A stretch of DNA of 62,637 bases, filler included, from Trichosphaerium sp. ATCC 40318 (Eukaryota > Protista > Tubulinea), in NCBI GenBank assembly GCA_038496445.1. It is 3 parts of 3 records of this genome, joined end to end, with 100 filler letters (N's around TTAATTAATTAA, not from the genome) between each part and the next. Parts side by side here need not be neighbours in the genome. Positions count along the whole stretch, not along the records: positions 48,682 to 62,637 come from JALMLS010000312.1; 2 more parts are not named here. One strand, given 5' to 3'. Shown here piece by piece: positions 48,697 to 61,497 of this stretch. The notes under the pieces are model-generated. The model had not been told where the DNA came from, did not search any database, and saw only the letters and a program-made list of their open reading frames with translations. The translations under genes and the position numbers were made by a program. Position 1 is the first letter of the stretch. The number at the start of each line of letters is the position of its first letter.

Positions 48697-51600
48697 TTAG
48701 GGTGGTTTTTTTCTATGCCGTTTACTTTTCCTTCTATTTTTAGAGCTGAATTTAAATTTTCTAAGAAAAACATTAATGCAAGGTTTTCGTACAATGTAAT
48801 GATATCCTTGATTACATTTTATTTGAATGGACAGCAATGCAGTCATGCCATTATAAATAGCCACATACCTTTTTGGTCTGTGTTCCCGAAATTCCTCGTT
48901 GTAAAGATTTTGAGTTGGCTCTAATCTTGATAGTCTAGGAAGCCTAGGAAGCCTTCTTTTTGTTGTATTCGAATTCCTTTCATGTGTGACTCGTATTGAT
49001 TTTAGATGTGACACAACTTTATAGGATTTATTTTCCTCTGCATGATCAAACGCTGTTAACCCTCGATTATCGCAAGCTAAGGTATGCTTGTTAATATTTA
49101 GAAAACCCAAAAACAGCTGAATCTTTTTTTTGGGTTTGTTTTACCCCTTACCTGACACTTTTGTATTGTAAGTGAGCAGCAACTTAGCAAGTGTTATGTA
49201 ATCTCTCTTGGATGCATACCTAATAACTATGAGTAACTAATGTAATGGTACATGCCAACTGTGACAAAAACACACAAAAAAGTGCTTACATTAAAAGCGT
49301 CTGTCCGTTGTTGTCCTGAAACAAGTGGTTAGGAGATATGGTTTGATACATATTATTATGATATCATACGTAGTTGTTAACATGGTATTCTAGTATTCTC
49401 GGGTATGTGCGTATGATACAGATTGCAGCAGCTTCGTCAACTTCAATAGCAATGTGAAGTATATTTTGGTCATTATCATTTGAGATACGCCAATTTGCTC
49501 CAATATTAATAAGTTTATGAATAACATTTATCATTCTATGCCTTGCTGCTACTAAGTATAAAGTTAATATATTTAAATAGTATACTTTACATACTCAGTA
49601 GACATGTATCTCCATCAGAAGTTGTCAAATCTGGAAGTAAATGTATTGTAAGTTTTCTTGCTAAACACTTTTCAATGAATAGTATAAGTACCAATGTCAA
49701 CTCCAAGATTAGCTAGTACATCAAGCCATGATCGTGAATGATAGCTCGAGTATTTCATCATAATATGTATAGGAGCCATACCAGCATAAAGACCATCTGT
49801 GAATGGTACATCGAATAGGTTTTGTAATAACTTTGGTCCAATTTCAACGTAGTATGCATTTATCAATCTAGGTATTAAATCATAGTTGTGAAACTTTTTT
49901 GTTGATCCTGTTGGCTATTAGAGACAAACGTATAAATTTGATTATTACTTAATGCCAAATGTAGTAAAGAAATATCATTTTGTTGAATACAGTCCAAAGA
50001 AGCACCAAAAGTAATAAGCGTCTATTTGCAGAGTCAGGTTACACAAAGTAATTTTTTTTCTTTACCTGAAAAACATCAACCGCCTGCTCGTTATCTCCAT
50101 ACTCGGAACAAAGAATGTGTAAAGGAGTATGCCCATTAGCGTCTATAGTATATAAAAACCAAAGGGACTTTGGAAAGTAGTACCCATTGCGTTAATACCA
50201 CCCTCAGGAAGTCGTATTTCATGTTTGCTTGAAAACAAAACCCTCAAAGATTTCACATCACGTGTACTCACAAAAAAATGAACAATCGTGCTTCCTTTTG
50301 CTATAGTCCTTGGTATGCGTGTTATAGATGTACTCAAACTAGAATAAAATACATTAGTAACCAAACAGACACGTGAGGACCATACTCTAAACTAGGCGCT
50401 TGAAGCAATATCTCAACCGCACGCTTTTTATTCATAGTCATTGCAAGGGTCATTGGGGTAACCTGATCTTTAGCGAGTACTATTATTGGTATTAACACTT
50501 TGAAGTTATTAAAATGATATCACGTGCATGTAAGTTGTGGAATATATCCATGAGTACAGTCATCATGAAAAAGGTGATTAGCATTTATTGCTTCATACTT
50601 GCTAAGAAACTTTTTATACTCTAAAAATGGGCAAGGTGCGTTTGCATCACAACCAATGTCTATCAACGTCTTTACAATTGCATATCTATTCTATAGGTCT
50701 TTGTGAGTTTATATTTAATCGTTTTAAAGTAAGTACCAATACGATAGCATAAAACAAGAGTAAGCCTTGATATCTCTTCGTCAGCTTTATGTTCTAAAAA
50801 AAAGATTAAAAAATTAAGAAAATAAAAGGAATGAAAAGACTAAAGCGTACTTTTGTAAAAATGGATTTTGCCACTACTGGTACTATCCAGATAGATGCCA
50901 GGAGATCATTTATAGTTATTGTAAAGTGTACAGCATTAGAAAAGAAAACCATAGTCTTATGATCAGTCCCAAATGCAGCAAGAAGTGAAAACTTTAAAAG
51001 AAAGGCAATCTAACGAAGAAATGTTAGCACTTTAACACCTACAACCCTGAGAGAAAACAATCCAAATTGCTCATTAATAACCAGTGTACCTTTGGTATTA
51101 AAAGAGTATACGGGTGAGGTAGAGTTGAAGTAAAAACATCTCGACAAGCTTTTGTTAATGTTTGATACATTTCATCAATAGGTAGATTCATAGCAATACT
51201 GGGCGTTAACACAGGAGGGTTTGATGATCCAAGGAGGGTAAAGAATTCTGTAATTGTTGAAACTGTCCATTTTATATCATCAGATAACTTGAATCTATTA
51301 CTCGGCATCCAAGTCAATAAAGGAGCGTTCAATGTTATATTGAGTTTTTTTTCCCTTTTTGATTTAATACTCTCTTCGATTACATCAGTTTGATGCTTAA
51401 TGCTTTTTATAGGACAATAAAATGTATGTAGATTTGGGAAAACCTTCGGATCTGAAAGAACTTGACATGCTTCAGAAGAACAAGAAAGAGTAAGATCAAG
51501 TCTTTCTAAATTTGGTAATATTGATGATATCTTCGCTAATTGATCACTTTTTGTTATAGGAAACTCGCTACGGATGATACATAATTCTTTAAGGTTTGTA

Positions 51601-52240
51601 GTAGAGTTTATGAACCAGGTATCGCTTTGAGAGACTAGAAAAACATCAGGCTTTTGAGGATTATGTACACAAAATAACTTGAGCAGAAACGCAATTTGTG
51701 ATGCGTGATAAGCATCGATGTTGTTATAAAGCATGTAATACGAACCACTGAATACCCAGTCAAGGCGTGAAGCACTACAAAGGACTAGTTTCGTAAGTGT
51801 AGAACTGGAATGCTCTATTTTAGAGTCTGCACTTGGAATTAAGCTAATGGGCCTAAAAAAGGTTTACAACATGCGTGAAAATGCGTTTTAGCTTACTTCA
51901 GAATTGCCAAACGTTCAATTCGCGGGCATTCTCTCAAGATCATTTGAAAGGGCGGTGTTATTACTGTAGGCGCTGAAAAAAGGTCTAAAGAGTGAATGTA
52001 CTGGCCAAACGTTCCTATTGAACGTTGATTCCGCGGAAATACCTTAAATCGTTACGCACCGGCTATACTACGCCATAATTTGAACGGTACGGGTGAATAA
52101 TGAAACGAAACCGCATGCCAAGTAAATGGACTTGCAACCGCCTTTGAAGCGAGTTTAAACGCAGTTGATAACGACCATCGCTCGTGAAGTGTCAGTAGTG
52201 AAGCAATATGTGTCAACAGCTCTATTGGAAGAGATTCCAT
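48697..52240 (-). CDS. F-box - LRR-like - ankyrin-repeat protein (possibly two genes)
   Basis: MESLPIELLTHIASLL; LPNLERLDL, FPNLHTFY; DANGHTPLHIL, DNRGLTAFDHA ankyrin motifs. Confidence 0.65.
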
Positions 52241-52949
52241 TCAAAATGGATCCAAACTGAGTTATTGTAAAAAGGATTCAGTGGCGTTGCTTTTTCTCGG
52301 TTTAGCTTCAGCGAAATGTGAGTGTTGCGAAGTCTTCTCTTTTCACAAGGTGCCACTCATTTTAGAGTGTCACAAGACCAGTGTATTGTTAACCTATCAG
52401 AAGGACATCGCAAGCAAACTTCAGATTGACTTCAATTTATTAGGATATTTTCACGTGACTTTCGTACGATTTATTTCTTTTTTTTTTTTCAAACAAGAGG
52501 TTGTTAGATTTATTTCAGCACGTAGGAACGTAGATTTGGAACAGTACATGTGAACAGCCGCGTGCTGATATCTTATCGTCTTCCATGCCCTCTACGCCTT
52601 GCTCTGACCCTGAAACGTGTTTTGCCACCTGCTCTTCCTCCATGATGCCCCTCACTACTAGGTCTTGTTCTTTTTCTTGTTGACAATCTAATACCCATTT
52701 ATGATGCTATGAATCGAAGTACGGTCACCCTGAAGTTGTAGGAGTAGTATCCAAATTCAATGTTGAATTGCGTTAGTTCACAAAAGATATTTTTTTGTTT
52801 GACTATGAGTTTGCGTGAAGAGTACGTCAACTTAATGTAAACAAACAAAATAAGCGCACGTTACATAATTGGAATCCACACAAACGCAACAGAAAGCGAA
52901 TTAATGTTTAGCACAGAGTAACCAAAACCGCTATTTGACCTAGTCCTAC

Positions 52950-53130
52950 ACCCTTGACTTACCTATGAGGTTCTAGCAATTATGCTACAGCACAAAATCT
53001 GGTTTGGCAGCTCCCATAGCATGTCGTCTATTTTCTTCTATTGTTGATGAAATTATTGGCCATTACAATAAAAAGCAACACTCACTGAAAAAACACATGT
53101 CGGCTTTCTTCACCAACATAAAAACAGCGC
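52950..53130 (+). pseudogene. Degenerate N-terminal fragment of the F-box-LRR family
   Basis: EVLAIML...ACRLFSSIVDEIIGHY aligns by eye with TCHLLASIIHDIIGYH. Confidence 0.5.
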
Positions 53131-53265
53131 TTTTATATAGGACTGCATTGATACACCACCGTTTGAACACTGAATTCAACCCACCTTTAACGTAAACACG
53201 ACTAAGTTTCAATTTCGATTCTAACACTGTCAGTTGCGAAGAAATTTCAGTGAAAAACTTGCTTT

Positions 53266-53349
53266 TAGAGATGGCAGAAATACCAGTCCGGACCGGTTAA
53301 GGACCGAAAACCGATATCTTGAAACCGGACCGGTATCAGACCACCTCTA
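53266..53349. mobile_element. 84-bp hAT-like MITE
   Basis: Imperfect TIRs TAGAGATGG...CCACCTCTA, inner ATACCAGTCCGG/CCGGACCGGTAT, 8-bp TSD CTTGCTTT/ATTGCTTT, ACCG repeats. Confidence 0.75.
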
Positions 53350-53519
53350 ATTGCTTTGTGATGGCATTAATATGAAGAGCAATGTTGCTCTCTGTTGAAA
53401 ACAAGCCTCAAAAATAGGGAAACATTGCTACGTAGCACAGAGTGAGCATTTCGTGAACAAACAAACAAAAGCAAGTAAGTGAAATGTATTTATTAATAAA
53501 GACGTTTTGATTTGCTCAG

Positions 53520-53990
53520 ATGCGTGGTAAGGAGTCGAAAGAATGTTCACCTAATTTAAAGATTACTTTGTTAAACACTTATAGCTTTGGTAGTTACCTT
53601 TTAAATTGGTGATATCTACCCTAACAATGGCTCCTTTGCTTGTTACACAGAATAGAATAGGAGCACCTGAGTGATAGTTAAACATAAATCAAAGAAACAT
53701 TCCAATACAATCAGTTAACTGGACGTACTTTGAATAGAGCAATCTTTAATAGGATCTTCGTGGTTTAACCCACCATAACGTAAAGTAAATATCAATTTTG
53801 GTTCAAGATGTCCGCAGGCAGCAACTGAAACTGTAACAAAAAGTAAGATTAATAAGCTTGTCATTCAAAACATCTTTGTCCACAGCAACTTTTTGATGAA
53901 CGTACCTAGAGCGAGGAAGCAAATGAGATATAGATTGAGGTACATCGTTGATTAATAATGAGAAGTGTGGCTGATGTTGTTGTAATTGTT
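53520..53990 (-). CDS. Possible small multi-exon hypothetical gene or fragment
   Basis: Short exon-like blocks bounded by GT-AG; no family recognised. Confidence 0.25.
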
Positions 53991-54267
53991 GTTTAATGTT
54001 TAAAGATGCAACTTAAAATATGTTTTCTGCGCTTAACAAAAAATCAATCAAATCTTATAACTTTCGTCAACAATCCGATTGACTGATGGCCACTCCTTGA
54101 ATACTGGATAATGAAAACCCTATCTATGAACTATCAATCACATCATCAATCACAAGAACCTTTCAATCATTTTCGACTCGTTTTCAATCTCAGTTTTCAT
54201 TTTTAATCAATCACTATCAACAACAAATATGGGAATTGTGGTTAAAAGAGTGTTGAAGTATCTTTTC

Positions 54268-54545
54268 ATGTGTTTCTCGGCCTATTGGCTTTGATCATGT
54301 GTAATAAAAGTTCAGCTCCAGGCAAGTGACCATGTGTTACTTTGTCTTAAACCCATTATTTGGAAAACAAATGGTGATTGATCTTGCTTGCAATGTATGT
54401 TTGAAAACTTAGAAACAAACGTACAAGTGTCAATAAGAATGTACATTTAGCGTACTCTCAAGTGTGCTTACAACACTGCACAGGTCATAGTCACTTGCAT
54501 CCTCTTTCACTCACCTCCCACTGATCTAGCCTGCAGCTCTGACAA
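54268..54545 (+). ncRNA. U2: U2 spliceosomal snRNA, divergent (3' end uncertain)
   Basis: TTCTCGGCCTATTGGCTTTGATCATGTGTAATAAAAGTTC aligns without gaps to canonical TTCTCGGCCTTTTGGCTAAGATCAAGTGTAGTATCTGTTC; Sm-like ATTATTTGG at 54355. Confidence 0.85.
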
Positions 54546-54944
54546 AGGATTGGCTTTTCACCTAAGCACTAGGTTCAATTCCTGATACTACTTCGTGTTG
54601 TCTGGTTACAATACAATCACTTCTACCACGGTGGAAGCATGTGCTCCCGTAAACTATTCCTCAGCAAGTTCAAATACGAGTGCTTACAATCATTACTTCA
54701 TTCAAACATCATACAAAATCAACTACAATCTTGGTCAGTCTTTTCCTCACAATTACGGTCCGCATCCACTCATTACAAAATAGTTAACCTGAAATTCACT
54801 CTAAGTTTTTCTCGCATTGAGAGCGGTAGGTGCCACTCCTATGTAAGCCCTTCACTCTTCCAGGCAATAATATAAAACGTCGCAGCTTAGGAAAAGAAAT
54901 GTACCCATAAAATGAATTGTTAAGTATTTTAAGAACGTTTTTTT

Positions 54945-56633
54945 TTATTCATACGGCTTCAAACACCCAGTACTGATTAATCCTGAAATTGCATCACATG
55001 CTAGTCCTTGGCTTACTTTAGAAAACCTGTCAAACCCGGAGTTTCTATGTTAACTAAAGTTAACAAAGTGAAATGTAAGTATACACCTAACATACGAATT
55101 GCTTGATGATGGGCCCATAATCCCATCATTGTCATCAGGCACTCCAATCATTCTACCAATAGACCATCCTATATCACGACGTGTAATTAACGGTGTGCGA
55201 TCAGGAATTGTGAAGGAAGGTAAGGCTGGCTAAGAGTGGAACTCACTTAGTAGGCGACAACTTCAAAAAAAAAGTAAAGGGCGTACGTTTCCACATAGTA
55301 TTCTGGAGTTTGGCAAAGAAGAAAACGTTCCACAATTATGAAATAATATAGCCATTGCTGTAGTTCCACAGCATTGAGTTATTTGAGTTTCCCATCCAGG
55401 AACAAAAGTAGTACTAGGATTCTCACAATCGCTTGAGCGTTCAACATTCCAAGGCACTCTTCCTTGAAAGAAAAACTAAGGTTCTACATGTTGAATAATA
55501 CCTTGAGTTCAAAGGAAATCAATATACCTTGAGTTGTGTATACGATAGCGTTCTGTATTGAGATGTGCAACTTCTACAAAAGGGGTCAAAGGTGGTAAAA
55601 AGGTGAAGATTTTCAGTCTCGTCTTTCATACCAAATCAATCTCAAACCAAACATTGAGACTCATGATAGCTAATATGTAGTTAAGCTAGTTAGATGAAAG
55701 GTCTAATGTACCTTCAGCAATGAAATTTACAGTGTTTTCAATACTACTATGAACATTAAAGTACGCAACAGTTACAGCAATACTCTATAACGCAGCGTTA
55801 ACAAATACTTACAAAGGTTGTTAAAACGCACAACTGTAACTTCGTGGATTTCAGCAGGACAAGAAGAAGGAGGAGGAGAAAGCGGAGCTTTATCTCCAAC
55901 AGCTGCACCTCTTTTTACTGTTTTTATAGCTTGCTCAGGTTCTCTAAATATATAAAGTAAGTGATAGCTCAAGTACAATGCTACATATACCTGAACACCA
56001 AGTGAGTGCCATTCCCTATCAACGACTTGTGACGAGGAAGCATGAATGCCACGTGTCTTGTTTGTTCCGTAAGCAAACTTGCTACAATGGAGGGTCGTGC
56101 CTGTTAAGAGCATCGAAGAATTGCCAATGACCTTGTTCTGAGTACCAAAAACCAGAAAAGGTACCATCAGAGTATTTGGTAATTCGAAAATGTCGATGGC
56201 TTTCTCCTATAGCTTTGAACGTGTTTGAAGGCGCATCAATAAATGTCTCGTTATCGCCATTTTGAATTTGTATCTACAACAATTTTAGGAGTCACGTGAT
56301 AATTAAATTTAAGGCGTACTTTTGTATTTGTCGCGTATGCTGAGTGTTTAACACAAATGAAGGTCATAGTGGTGTTTAACTCGAACTTCAGTACCACTCT
56401 ATGGTGGTATTCATCCACGCGTAGTAGTGATACTAAAACGAGATGAATACTAGTTAATCTGGTACTGCAGGTACCTATTTTAATTACTTCAAATTCTTCT
56501 GTGTTTTTCCAAAATTCGTGATTATATCCCCTCACAAACATGATAAACAATAGACAAGTACCTTTGGTGTTTTTAATACACGTTTTTGGAATTATAGTAA
56601 TTACGTACAACAAACAGTTTTCGCATTCCACAT
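54945..56633 (-). CDS. Secreted M12B-like protein lacking the zinc-binding motif (pseudoprotease)
   Basis: Collinear similarity to 31986-34342 (W.N..EFEV, PPP..CP, L.HNC, GIM, RFS..SQ...C); HEIGH is replaced by WSIGR. Confidence 0.7.
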
Positions 56634-57199
56634 GTTAATGGAAGCGATTATTAGATATTATTTTGAAAAGGGTCACCAGGGAAAGATCGGTTTTTTGATA
56701 CTGGAACTTTTTTTAGAGCTTCGGGCGTTTAAGCGAGTGTGAATTGATTCTTAACGAGTACATAGACGCTGCTAATTTGTCACTACGTACTAAATGTAGG
56801 GTTCAACTTGCAGACTGCAGACGACAGACGTTGCACTACAGCGTACTTAACTTATATATAAGTAACCGACCTTAGGTCACAAAATGTAAATCAAGAAATG
56901 ACGCCGAAGCAAAATGTGCTTACGCTTCAGCACAAGCTGGTTTTCTTTTTTGAATGACCTTCTTCAATATGTGATTGACAATGTAGCTGTGGAAAAAAAC
57001 AAAATTTATTTCCGGGCTGTTGTTTTGAGTTGATACTTGTTCATTTTTTTAATTTTCATATTCTAAATTAACTTTGTTTTTTTGTTGAACAAGACCAAGT
57101 TATCGTCATTATTATATTATTATTTTAGTATCTAATGTATCATCGAGTGCGCACTCATGTTTATACATATTATTTACACTAATGCCCGTTAATAAATAT

Positions 57200-59250
57200 A
57201 CAAGTGGAAGAGTTAAAGAACAGAACAACATTGAACTTGAAAAAATTGTGGGACTTCAAAAAGCAATGACTTGTTTCATTTCACTGAAATTCTAAAAAGA
57301 TCAGCAAAAAAAATGACCCTTTAAACATACAATACGCTTGTACAACTCCCTAAGAGTAGGCTTACAACTATTCAACATTGCGGTGTAATAGAGATTCGCG
57401 ATTTTTTCTTGTTTTTCACAAGCATCTATGTCTAAAATTCTTGTACAATTTATAAAAATACATTGTTGGCTGTACAGGTTTTCTTCGTCTAAGTCCAGTA
57501 AGAAGTGCTATTGGCACCAGATAACAGTTCCATCATAGCACCATCACCGATTTCTACGTCATAAGGGAGTGCATCTACAAAAAAAGTTAATAATCTAACA
57601 AAACCAAAACAGCTTGTTGACTTACTGACGATTTCTTCTGTAATATCCCACGTGGGTGAAGGACTTGGATTGGTTTGATACTCCAGAAGTTTAACAATCT
57701 CTTTAAAACGTCCAAGTAAAAAATTGCTATCTTCTGTTTCATCAGGGAAGTATGTTTCCATCTCTTTGACCCTGCCAAGAAAAAAGGTTAGAACATTCAA
57801 AAAACAGCAAAAAAATCTTTACAGTACCGTTGCTTAGCATTATCAAGAGGTGATAAACCTTGATAAGATATAACAGATAATTGGGCTTTCTCTCGTATAA
57901 GAATCTAGAATAAAATCAATGACTTTGATGAACTAGTTTCTTTGCAGTTTTTTTTTTCGCTTTTTTTTACCTCAACTATTTCTTTTCGTCCTTCGATAGC
58001 CGCTAGATGAATACATGTATATCCATATGCATCTTTTTTTGAAAGCATTTTATATCTTTCTTCAATACTACACAATAAAAGAAGCATCTCAAATACCTCC
58101 ACACTAACCGTTTGTTAGAAAGTTCAACATAATTTTTTGATAAGAAAAATATTGTTTTACCTTCCATATACTACAGCCATACTTATTGGTATTCGAGTAT
58201 TGTGATTAACAGCCTTTAATTGTGTCTTTATATTAGGTATACTATCAAGAAGTAACTGCATTATAAGCGGCTAAGTAACACATTAAAAGCCATTGTTAAT
58301 AGTTCAATAAATACCTCATTGCTTTGTGCTGCTGTGTGCATTAGTGTATTGGCATCATAGTCAATACAAGAGCATACTTCAATACGATCATCTTCGTCCA
58401 AGCTCTGAATAATAAAATCAACAATATCGTACGAGCCATGAAACTACAAGTGATGTTAACAGCGACAGCAAAAAAAAATAACCAAAAAAAGTTAAACTAT
58501 GCACGTTTTGCAGTTTGTTAAATGCAACGCATCAGTGTTAATGCGCATGGACAAAAATTGTTTAATAATTAAGGCATAAAATCATAATATTACCACAGCT
58601 TCCTGAAGTGGTGTATAACAATTATTGTTCTTTTGTAATAACCACTTCATCCTTGTGTCATCTGAAAGCTCAGTAAACATTCTCTTGAATATCTTTGTAT
58701 TATTTGATGCAGCAGCTAGATGAAGAGGTAAATCGCCATGAATATCAGCTGTTGTATAAGTAGTCATCTCGCACTAAAAAACACTCAACAAGGTCACAAA
58801 GGCGGAGTTCATAAACAGAATAAAATAAGAAATAACTTCTTACCAGTTTACTTATCTCGTCTGTTATTTCTCCAAAGTATACTGAAGCAACACGATGAAG
58901 AGCTGTGTGTTTAATATGTACATCAACATTACCCAAAATATCTTCAATAGCATTAACAGGAGGTGCATCTTCATCGTCAACCTTCGAAACACCAAAACGT
59001 GAAAAAATCTCCTTCAACGATCACGTTAGTTTGCCAAGGGAAATTGTAAAGTGTAAGTAATCCGTACCTGTATCCTCTCATAACGCTTTCGTTTAGATCC
59101 AGGTTCATGAGCCTTGTATCTCTCAAGACATAAATTCAAAACATCCAAAGGAGTTTTGCGTTCATTACAGCGGAGTTTGTATTAATGACATCTGTTGTCA
59201 AATTTTTAAGGGACACAGATGTCTACTAAAAGTACGTTATTTGCTAGAAC
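57200..59250 (-). CDS. Ankyrin-repeat protein, multi-exon (ends uncertain)
   Basis: HTALHRVA, DIHGDLPLHLAA, NCYTPLQEA, DAYGYTCIHLAAIEG. Confidence 0.7.
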
Positions 59251-59445
59251 GTGTATTTTCTAACAAATATTGCTGTTCAAACAACGCACTTTAAGTTGGC
59301 GTTACGTTACTTCTATCAAAAATCTTTTAAGTTTTTATCATGTACACATATACTTTTGTTATATCACGGAGTTTGGCAATTGTAAAACTCGATAGAGCAT
59401 TCCCTTGATGAAGACAAAAAAATTGTACTTACTTTTTTAATTCAG

Positions 59446-60294
<849 letters not shown>

Positions 60295-60681
60295 AATACA
60301 CTTTTTTGTAAAAAAAAAAATAAATAAAAAGGAAAAACGCAAAGTTTTTACATTTAACTATCCGCAAAGGAGAAAATAGATCAAAAAATATCCAGATAAT
60401 AAAATAATCTAAATTAGCGCTATCAGATAGCTTGTAAAAATTTGTATTTGTTACAACTAAAGAAATGGAGCAGAGCTTGCACAAAAAGTTTCCTGTTTTG
60501 GTTTTGTACTATTGCATCCAAACACTGAAAGCTAGTTCAACTCACCCCTCCTGCATCAGCATTTGCGTGCACTAAACTGCACTAGGTGTATTGTCTATCC
60601 AACGTTGTTGTTCAACCAAACATCTTAACCTTTGATTCTTTGACACGTCTTAATTTATACCGTAATGGGTTTTCTGTTTGG

Positions 60682-61497
60682 TCTACTTTTTTTGGGCTTC
60701 TAAGTTACGTATAACAACATCCACATTTGATTCAAATAGTAAACCACCTTGAATCATCTCATCAATAACAAAATGTACCTTTAAAATCGTTAGAGCTCAT
60801 TGGTGAAAGAAATTTTGGAAAAAAAAAAAAATATTGAAAAAAAAAAAATGAGTTTTTGATGACACGTGGTTTGGAAAGTTACCTTCTCTACGTTGAGTTC
60901 TATATCCAGCTCGCATACATCTTTGAATTGTTTATCAAGGCATTGCATCTAATAAAAAATATTAGGTCATCTCTAGGAGAAGGAAAATGAAGAAAATTTC
61001 TGATGTTAGTACCAAAGTGTCAATAATTTCTAGAATCCCAATTCTGGCTCGCTATCATCAACAACGAATACAATAAACAGTCTAGCGTACTAAAAAGTAT
61101 TGTTAGATGTATGACATCCCTGACAGCTATCGTTATGGATGTAGAGCCGGTTTTAACTTTAAACGTTGGTAACCTTTTTATATATGAGTTTCGTCCCTTT
61201 TCCCCTTCTCTTGCGCGTGAGAAAGTAATAAAAACCAATATAAAAGGGATTTGTACTTACATTTTGTCAATTCGCCATCTATGAAACTAGATAGTATTTT
61301 ACGCTTACTCAGTAGAGATATAACATCGTGGAGGTATTCTTTTTTTTTCTCGTCGTCCTTTGGTTGTAGTTGATTAATTCACGTTTGTTGTAACACAAAA
61401 CAGCGTAAGAGCTCATAATTTGGCGTACAAGAAGAGAATAGAACTTTGTTAAACGCACTTGGCGCTCTTCGTTAAAGAATAGAATAGCATGTATCAT
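60682..61497 (-). CDS. Adaptor (AP) complex sigma subunit, AP-3-like
   Basis: MIHAILFFN...RLTKFY, LIYKKYARLF, LDKQFKDVCELDI, VHFVIDEMIQGG; two apparent single-G deletions. Confidence 0.85.

Follow-up and report, generated by a model that had tools for sequence, protein, structure and literature searches.

A diverged U2 snRNA-like locus carrying GUAAUA amid two classes of intron branch motif in Trichosphaerium sp. ATCC 40318

A piece of the Trichosphaerium sp. ATCC 40318 genome contains a full-length relative of U2 snRNA in which four features that define working U2 RNAs have failed. Its branch-point recognition hexamer reads GUAAUA, not GUAGUA. We give a probability of roughly 0.5 to the reading that the locus is a drifting U2 variant paralogue that has come under weaker constraint, or else a pseudogene, standing beside a canonical GUAGUA U2 elsewhere in the genome. 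Under this reading, a U2 snRNA gene copy would have drifted far from the working design while remaining full length, and the G-to-A change in the branch motif would be one of approximately eight substitutions at almost invariant U2 positions. A canonical GUAGUA U2 encoded elsewhere would do the main splicing work, and the abundant TATTAAC and TGTTAAC motifs of this AT-rich genome would be accommodated by ordinary G·U wobble with that normal U2. We infer two things: the main working U2 is not this locus, and the genome has a canonical copy elsewhere.

Extent and Rfam score of the U2-like locus

The window (the whole stretch of DNA analysed, 62,637 nucleotides) includes a 13,956-base piece that carries the U2 snRNA-like sequence at 54268..54436 (+), approximately 169 nt if A54268 is taken as the start; counting from this base gives the same register as in yeast and plant U2. 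The Rfam U2 model (RF00004) matched positions 54269-54436 (+) over model positions 1-192 with 41.5 bits, at E-values of 1.4e-5 for the whole 13,956-base piece and 1.4e-6 for 1.4 kb, and on the strength of this alignment 54269-54436 can be considered U2-derived beyond chance (E 1.4e-5). The Rfam gathering score for RF00004 is 46 bits, of which the match falls short, and no U2 match at the gathering threshold was obtained. In the E-value search, U2 was the sole Rfam family in the piece: no U6, no other non-U2 family and no tRNA was found across the 13,956 bases. A preliminary description of this DNA had called the locus a U2 snRNA. U2 ancestry is upheld by the score, and the Rfam model search of the piece did return one U2-like copy, but a sub-threshold one, the 3' part of which is not recognized by itself. 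Specifically, nt 1-50 searched alone were assigned to U2 with 28.6 bits, and the 3' part searched alone gave no U2 match even at E 10. Within the full RF00004 alignment the 3' part nevertheless contributes approximately 13 bits and is collinear with U2—UUAAA, an Sm-like site and GCUUGC occur at about canonical spacing—with collinearity reaching approximately nt 125 of U2.

The locus shares with canonical U2 (RF00004) stem-loop I, GCU followed by GAUCA, GUGUA.UA equally far from the 5' end, a hairpin at the stem-loop IIb position, an Sm-like site, a GCUUGC loop and a length of approximately 170 nt. It differs from canonical U2 in its sub-threshold score, A for G in GUAGUA, the UU linker, GAUCAUG, AAA for UCU, the lack of a recognizable IIa or IV loop and an interrupted Sm site. 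Neither flanking direct repeats nor an A-tail were found around the locus (the coordinates of its parts, and of the introns and genes discussed below, are given in Table 1).

Table 1. Features of the U2-like locus, curated introns and neighbouring genes (positions along the window).
Feature	Position	Strand	Detail or basis
Stem-loop I	54275..54294	+	UCU-C-GGCC / UAUU / GGCU-U-UGA; cmscan alignment with NC marks
U6-pairing segments	54288..54297	+	GCU 54288-90 (helix Ib), UU 54291-92, GAUCA 54293-97 (helix Ia)
Branch-point recognition sequence GUGUAAUA	54299..54306	+	Read directly and aligned to consensus
Expected UCUGUUCUU and stem-loop IIa region	54307..54320	+	Reads AAAGUUCAGCUCCA
Hairpin at stem-loop IIb position	54321..54346	+	Stable fold, loop CAUGU
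Sm-site-like AUUAUUUGG	54355..54363	+	Aligned to consensus AUUUUUGG
Long 3' hairpin	54382..54438	+	Stem III loop motif GCUUGC 54386-54391
T-type intron, example	57575..57625	-	Ankyrin-repeat gene; TATTAAC, branch A 12 nt from 3' splice site
Further TATTAAC introns	49552-49590, 49077-49151, 58256-58314		Hand-curated
C-type intron, example	57772..57827	-	TTCTAAC, branch A 16 nt from 3' splice site
Further C-type introns	58104-58160, 49316-49369, 61090-61260, 60779-60882		Hand-curated
Further C-type introns	59759-59822, 59232-59295	+	Hand-curated
DDX3/Vasa-type DEAD-box helicase, 3' exons		+	Helicase_C 6.8e-15
Two ankyrin-repeat genes, F-box/LRR gene, AP-3 sigma-like gene		-	AP-3 sigma-like gene recognized by eye

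Conserved 5' core

Direct reading of the bases confirmed GTAATA at 54301-54306 and GCT-TT-GATCA at 54288-54297 exactly as first described. Both deviations are therefore present, but the original list of two was incomplete: the stem I loop, GAUCAUG, IIa, the IV loop and the Sm site also depart from U2, and at least six near-invariant positions are altered besides the two that had been flagged. Stem-loop I followed by GCU..GAUCA is present, with GGCC/GGCU, GCU and GAUCA intact and UU as the linker. Stem-loop I keeps its upper 4 bp but not its lowest pair, which the second U of the linker turns into a U·U mismatch, and the loop reads UAUU versus UUUU in the Rfam consensus; the local fold has a free energy of -6.8 kcal/mol (z -2.2). 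The helix Ia and Ib assignments apply established U2/U6 models to the aligned sequence. As had been pointed out, the UU linker stands in place of AA, the state of animals and plants. Budding and fission yeast U2 have UA at the linker, so AA is not universal, and by this comparison UU would be one step from a known state. In addition, GAUCAUG takes the place of consensus GAUCAAG, and AAA replaces UCU directly after the branch-pairing motif; relative to the Rfam consensus, UAUCUGUUCUU has become UAAAAGUUCAG.

The altered base of the branch motif lies at 54304, an A in place of the G found in almost every known U2 RNA; it is nt 37 counted from A54268, with GUGUAAUA spanning nt 32-39 and the hexamer at 54301-54306 reading GUAAUA, not GUAGUA. 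The core changes mostly spare the U6- and branch-pairing blocks: GGCC/GGCU, GCU, GAUCA and GUGUA are all unaltered. A 2026 survey found GUAGUA kept in all sampled eukaryotes but two sponges, whose Rfam U2 sequences carry substitutions (PMC13685798); natural exceptions to GUAGUA may thus exist, glimpsed so far rather than studied. A literature search for GUAAUA together with U2 found nothing. The heptamer CATGTGT occurs three times in 75 nt (54267-54341): once at the 5' end, once immediately ahead of the branch-pairing motif and once in the loop of the hairpin.

Downstream domains

Immediately downstream of the branch motif, the conserved IIa sequence is swapped for a shorter, unrelated stretch. 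The IIa region is 11 nt shorter, only GUUC is kept within 54307-54320, and no IIa helix of more than 2 bp was found there; the cmscan alignment shows two remaining base pairs and a deletion. For the segment of UCUGUUCUU and the branchpoint-interacting stem-loop, the minimum free energy is 0 kcal/mol; the segment does not fold, and the feature is absent. The hairpin at the IIb position has its CAUGU loop in common with the plant-type U2 at L001 (described below), from which its stem differs by paired changes. Sm sites have the form A U4-6 G and lie between structured domains. In AUUAUUUGG, the U run is broken by A, and the predicted fold sequesters the site in a hairpin with 54368-54376. The 3' domain (54352-54440) is predicted to fold stably (-22.5 kcal/mol, z -4.23, 0 of 200 shuffles as stable), with perfect helices of 9-10 bp and of 7-11 bp, the former (54395-54403 / 54416-54424) lying in the long 3' hairpin. 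The locus has the GCUUGC loop but lacks the stem-loop IV motif bound by U2A'/U2B'': it contains no UUGCA.UAC, nor any loop of the U2B'' type. A 13-nt inverted repeat (12 of 13 positions complementary) connects 54322-54334, in the IIb-position hairpin, with 54486-54498, 50 nt past the Rfam match; approximately 0.06 such pairs are expected by chance in the stretch.

Branch sites of the local introns

Using reading frames and GT..AG boundaries, we curated by hand 29 putative short introns in the same piece (span 48761-61428), a small sample of predicted intron models. Their lengths are mostly 34-108 nt, often 34-70 nt, and 22 of the 29 contain a YTRAY motif with the branch A mostly 11-16 nt from the 3' splice site. 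The introns combine weak donors beyond GTA with a strong YTAAC/YTAAT 11-16 nt from the 3' splice site, a fungus-like architecture. A strict motif (NNYTAAC, 11-40 nt from the 3' splice site) was present in 13/29 introns: seven C-type (TTCTAAC three times, AACTAAC, TCCTAAC, ATCTAAC and CTCTAAC) and six T-type (TATTAAC four times, TGTTAAC and TCTTAAC). The intron positions cited at the outset fall outside the piece and were set aside, but the two classes of branch motif reported there, of TRTTAAC and TACTAAC type, do occur side by side in introns of one piece (6 versus 7). TATTAAC pairs with GUAAUA, as also claimed, and is its perfect complement.

GUAGUA pairs with all 13 strict motifs, through G-C or G·U, and GUAAUA mismatches every CTAAC-type site, leaving 3-4 base pairs. 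C lies opposite the altered U2 base at 7/13 sites versus a frequency of 0.28 expected from intron composition, an enrichment of approximately twofold (binomial p 0.04). Such a bias points to G as the partner; A would not be expected to produce it. The suggestion that the spliceosome and branch sites had co-diverged is disfavoured in its wholesale form by this count. The other suggestion, a second U2 isoform for an intron subclass (TATTAAC), is possible and compatible with the data. UA at heptamer positions 1-2 was found in 4/6 T-type and 0/7 C-type motifs (Fisher p 0.02, post hoc, n=13), an association that is compatible with an isoform and equally expected if G·U, as the weaker pair, depends on pairing at its flanks. 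An ordinary GUAGUA U2 would fully serve all the local introns. An isoform is not needed: G·U wobble lets normal U2 act on UAUUAAC, which is the natural branch site of the SAE3 intron in yeast (PMC3141232).

GUAAUA-type U2 in other collections

A metagenome scan for U2 5' regions carrying GTAATA yielded three loci (L001-L003), all of them plant-type U2 copies unrelated to 54268-54436. L001 is a full-length plant-type U2 (164 bits) that is otherwise perfect and has only the G>A change (GUAAUA); upstream, a USE-like GTCCCACCTCG and a TATA-like CATAAAAGG occur at plant Pol II snRNA spacing (L001:21-300 (-)), and judging from these elements it is a seemingly active U2 gene with GUAAUA. L002 and L003 are truncated U2 copies with the same G>A. 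The three loci indicate that G>A arises repeatedly in multi-copy U2 families, in active-looking genes and evident relics alike. Two prokaryote-genome matches to the GTAATA-type U2 5' region were rejected as chance occurrences inside bacterial sequence, and a scan of viral contigs for this region gave no match.

Origin of the locus

We favour a drifting paralogue or pseudogene because the locus scores 41.5 bits against a threshold of 46 bits and L001, with G>A alone, scores 164 bits; because the core is changed, IIa and the IV loop are missing, no clean Sm site is present and the branchpoint-interacting stem-loop segment does not fold; and because CTAAC-type motifs number seven to six of the TTAAC type, with C enriched and GUAGUA pairing with all. 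The same reading is favoured by the sporadic appearance of an identical G>A among multi-copy U2 families, truncated pseudogenes such as L002 and L003 among them, and by the handling of UAUUAAC by normal U2 in yeast SAE3 (PMC3141232). Frameshifts in neighbouring genes, one of which looks degenerate, suggest that the region holds decayed duplicates or sequence errors. Against drift, uniform neutral decay at approximately 20% core divergence should have broken the 3' helices (z -4.2), and the core changes mostly avoid the U6- and branch-pairing blocks; nor was any canonical U2 copy seen within the 14 kb covered. Gene-dense genomes usually hold few snRNA pseudogenes, and the fairly high gene density of the piece thus also speaks against one here, as do the GUAGUA substitutions in two sponges, through which natural exceptions may exist (PMC13685798).

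That the locus is a working U2 or an isoform of any kind, all such readings taken together, is a tentative possibility, and we regard it as doubtful that the organism expresses a natural GUAAUA U2, main or second isoform, whose helix would be perfect with the abundant UAUUAAC class. Within this range, an expressed minor isoform is unlikely: a canonical U2 would serve CTAAC-type sites and the GUAAUA variant, through a six-pair helix, would help to splice the UAUUAAC class. This arrangement would account for TATTAAC at the branch position in 4/29 curated introns, for the restriction of UA at positions 1-2 to T-type motifs (4/6 versus 0/7, Fisher p 0.02) and for the intact core pairing blocks and 3' hairpins, and L001, which combines GUAAUA with an intact USE-like element and TATA, suggests that the variant is possible in seemingly active genes. 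However, the candidate isoform has no recognizable IIa or U2B''-type loop and an imperfect Sm site, and the UA/T association is post hoc, comprises 13 sites and is predicted equally by compensation of G·U through flanking pairs. It is very unlikely that the locus is the main or only U2 of a diverged lineage in which branch sites are moving to UAUUAAC under AT pressure, that is, by co-divergence. The genome seems compact, and in a compact genome a U2-like locus has a high prior chance of being the gene; the U6-pairing bases and most of those that pair with the branch site are unchanged, the fold of the 3' domain is stable and GUAGUA substitutions are found in the Rfam U2 of two sponges (PMC13685798). 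The neighbouring helicase exons, closest to Vasa/DDX3, would also fit an animal. Yet more than half of the strict motifs are CTAAC-type with C enriched, and an A partner should select against C; moreover, one would expect the U2 of an intron-rich genome that uses conventional splice signals to score far above 46 bits, and neither IIa nor the loop of stem-loop IV, both essential, can be recognized.

The locus might instead be a U2 5' fragment of approximately 50 nt fused to unrelated sequence, either a 3'-truncated retro-pseudogene or a U2-headed repeat, in which case the resemblances to an Sm site and GCUUGC farther downstream would be fortuitous. Recognition of nt 1-50 alone (28.6 bits) and not of the remainder alone, together with truncated U2 copies of exactly that kind in metagenome contigs (L002, L003), fits this explanation, which we nonetheless consider quite unlikely given that the 3' part adds approximately 13 bits, that UUAAA, the Sm-like site and GCUUGC are collinear at near-canonical spacing, that the IIb-position hairpin has its loop in common with a plant-type U2 (L001) and that flanking direct repeats and an A-tail are lacking. 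That the deviations arose through faulty assembly or base calling of a normal U2 gene is hardly credible. Three frameshifts in well-conserved exons of two neighbouring genes do suggest an imperfect consensus, but these lesions are indels, whereas the U2 differences comprise many substitutions and an 11-nt shorter IIa region and far exceed any plausible consensus error rate.

Likeness to known U2 variants

Multi-copy U2 variants and pseudogenes (human RNU2 variants and L001-L003) likewise carry point changes at conserved positions, and L001-L003 share the exact G>A change with 54304; these copies are near-identical to a canonical parent, whereas 54268-54436 differs throughout yet keeps stable helices. 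Diverged U2 RNAs of kinetoplastids, diplomonads and microsporidia have a conserved 5' third and an idiosyncratic 3' domain, are short and score sub-threshold against general models, and the introns of their hosts are few or atypical. The locus resembles them in its conserved 5' third, idiosyncratic 3' domain, short length and sub-threshold score; in contrast to those hosts, the neighbouring genes here have many conventional GT..AG introns with a strong YTAAC. In 1987, Parker, Siliciano and Guthrie reportedly found that yeast branch-site mutations are suppressed allele-specifically by compensatory U2 mutations. The pairing logic is the same in that a GUAGUA change re-targets U2 to a complementary UACUAAC change, although the yeast system is engineered. 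To our knowledge, no natural U2 isoform pair of this compensatory type has been shown.

If the organism did express a GUAAUA U2, it would provide a natural counterpart of the engineered yeast compensatory U2/branch-site pairs and an exceptional departure from GUAGUA, an RNA motif that ranks among the best conserved in eukaryotes. Matched to a class of UAUUAAC introns, it would also show that evolution can partition or re-tune the recognition of branch sites, and would offer a natural system for studies of branch-helix specificity. To claim spliceosome co-evolution, more than a single diverged snRNA copy is needed; the locus does single out a genome in which the complete set of snRNAs and the branch-site logo merit a look.

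Neighbouring genes

The piece (approximately 35% G+C) is fairly gene-dense and derives from an intron-rich eukaryote. Alternative genetic codes were considered as a cause of the sparse and short open reading frames and were rejected; introns explain the sparseness. The F-box/LRR gene comprises a 274-codon open frame at 51042-51863 (-) and an F-box exon at 52055-52240 (-), with weak LRR and F-box signals. A word search with this open reading frame detected no relatives at E 1e-3, the frame itself is not on record, and an exhaustive search among 1.84 billion representatives gave one weak LRR match, located on a large and probably plant-derived chromosome; the frame is either an orphan gene or belongs to an unsampled lineage.

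The exons were searched individually, and the nearest solved structures (PDB) to those of the helicase are Vasa and DDX3X, an affinity that hints at an animal and contrasts with the fungus-like introns. Three single- or double-base frameshifts lie inside well-conserved exons, at 61029-61090 (-), 59500-59515 (+) and 59806-59825 (+): one in the AP-3 sigma-like gene, between ...SEPELG and ILEII, and two in the helicase, at ...LIKTH / DKVETLV and FKNID / LKILVATS. They represent either assembly indel errors or recent pseudogenisation (decaying duplicates). The upstream half of the helicase at 59090-59450 (+) looks degenerate, with stops and DEDK in the place of the DEAD motif, and may be a decayed, intron-containing duplicate; the same interval overlaps the 5' region of an ankyrin-repeat gene on the opposite strand.
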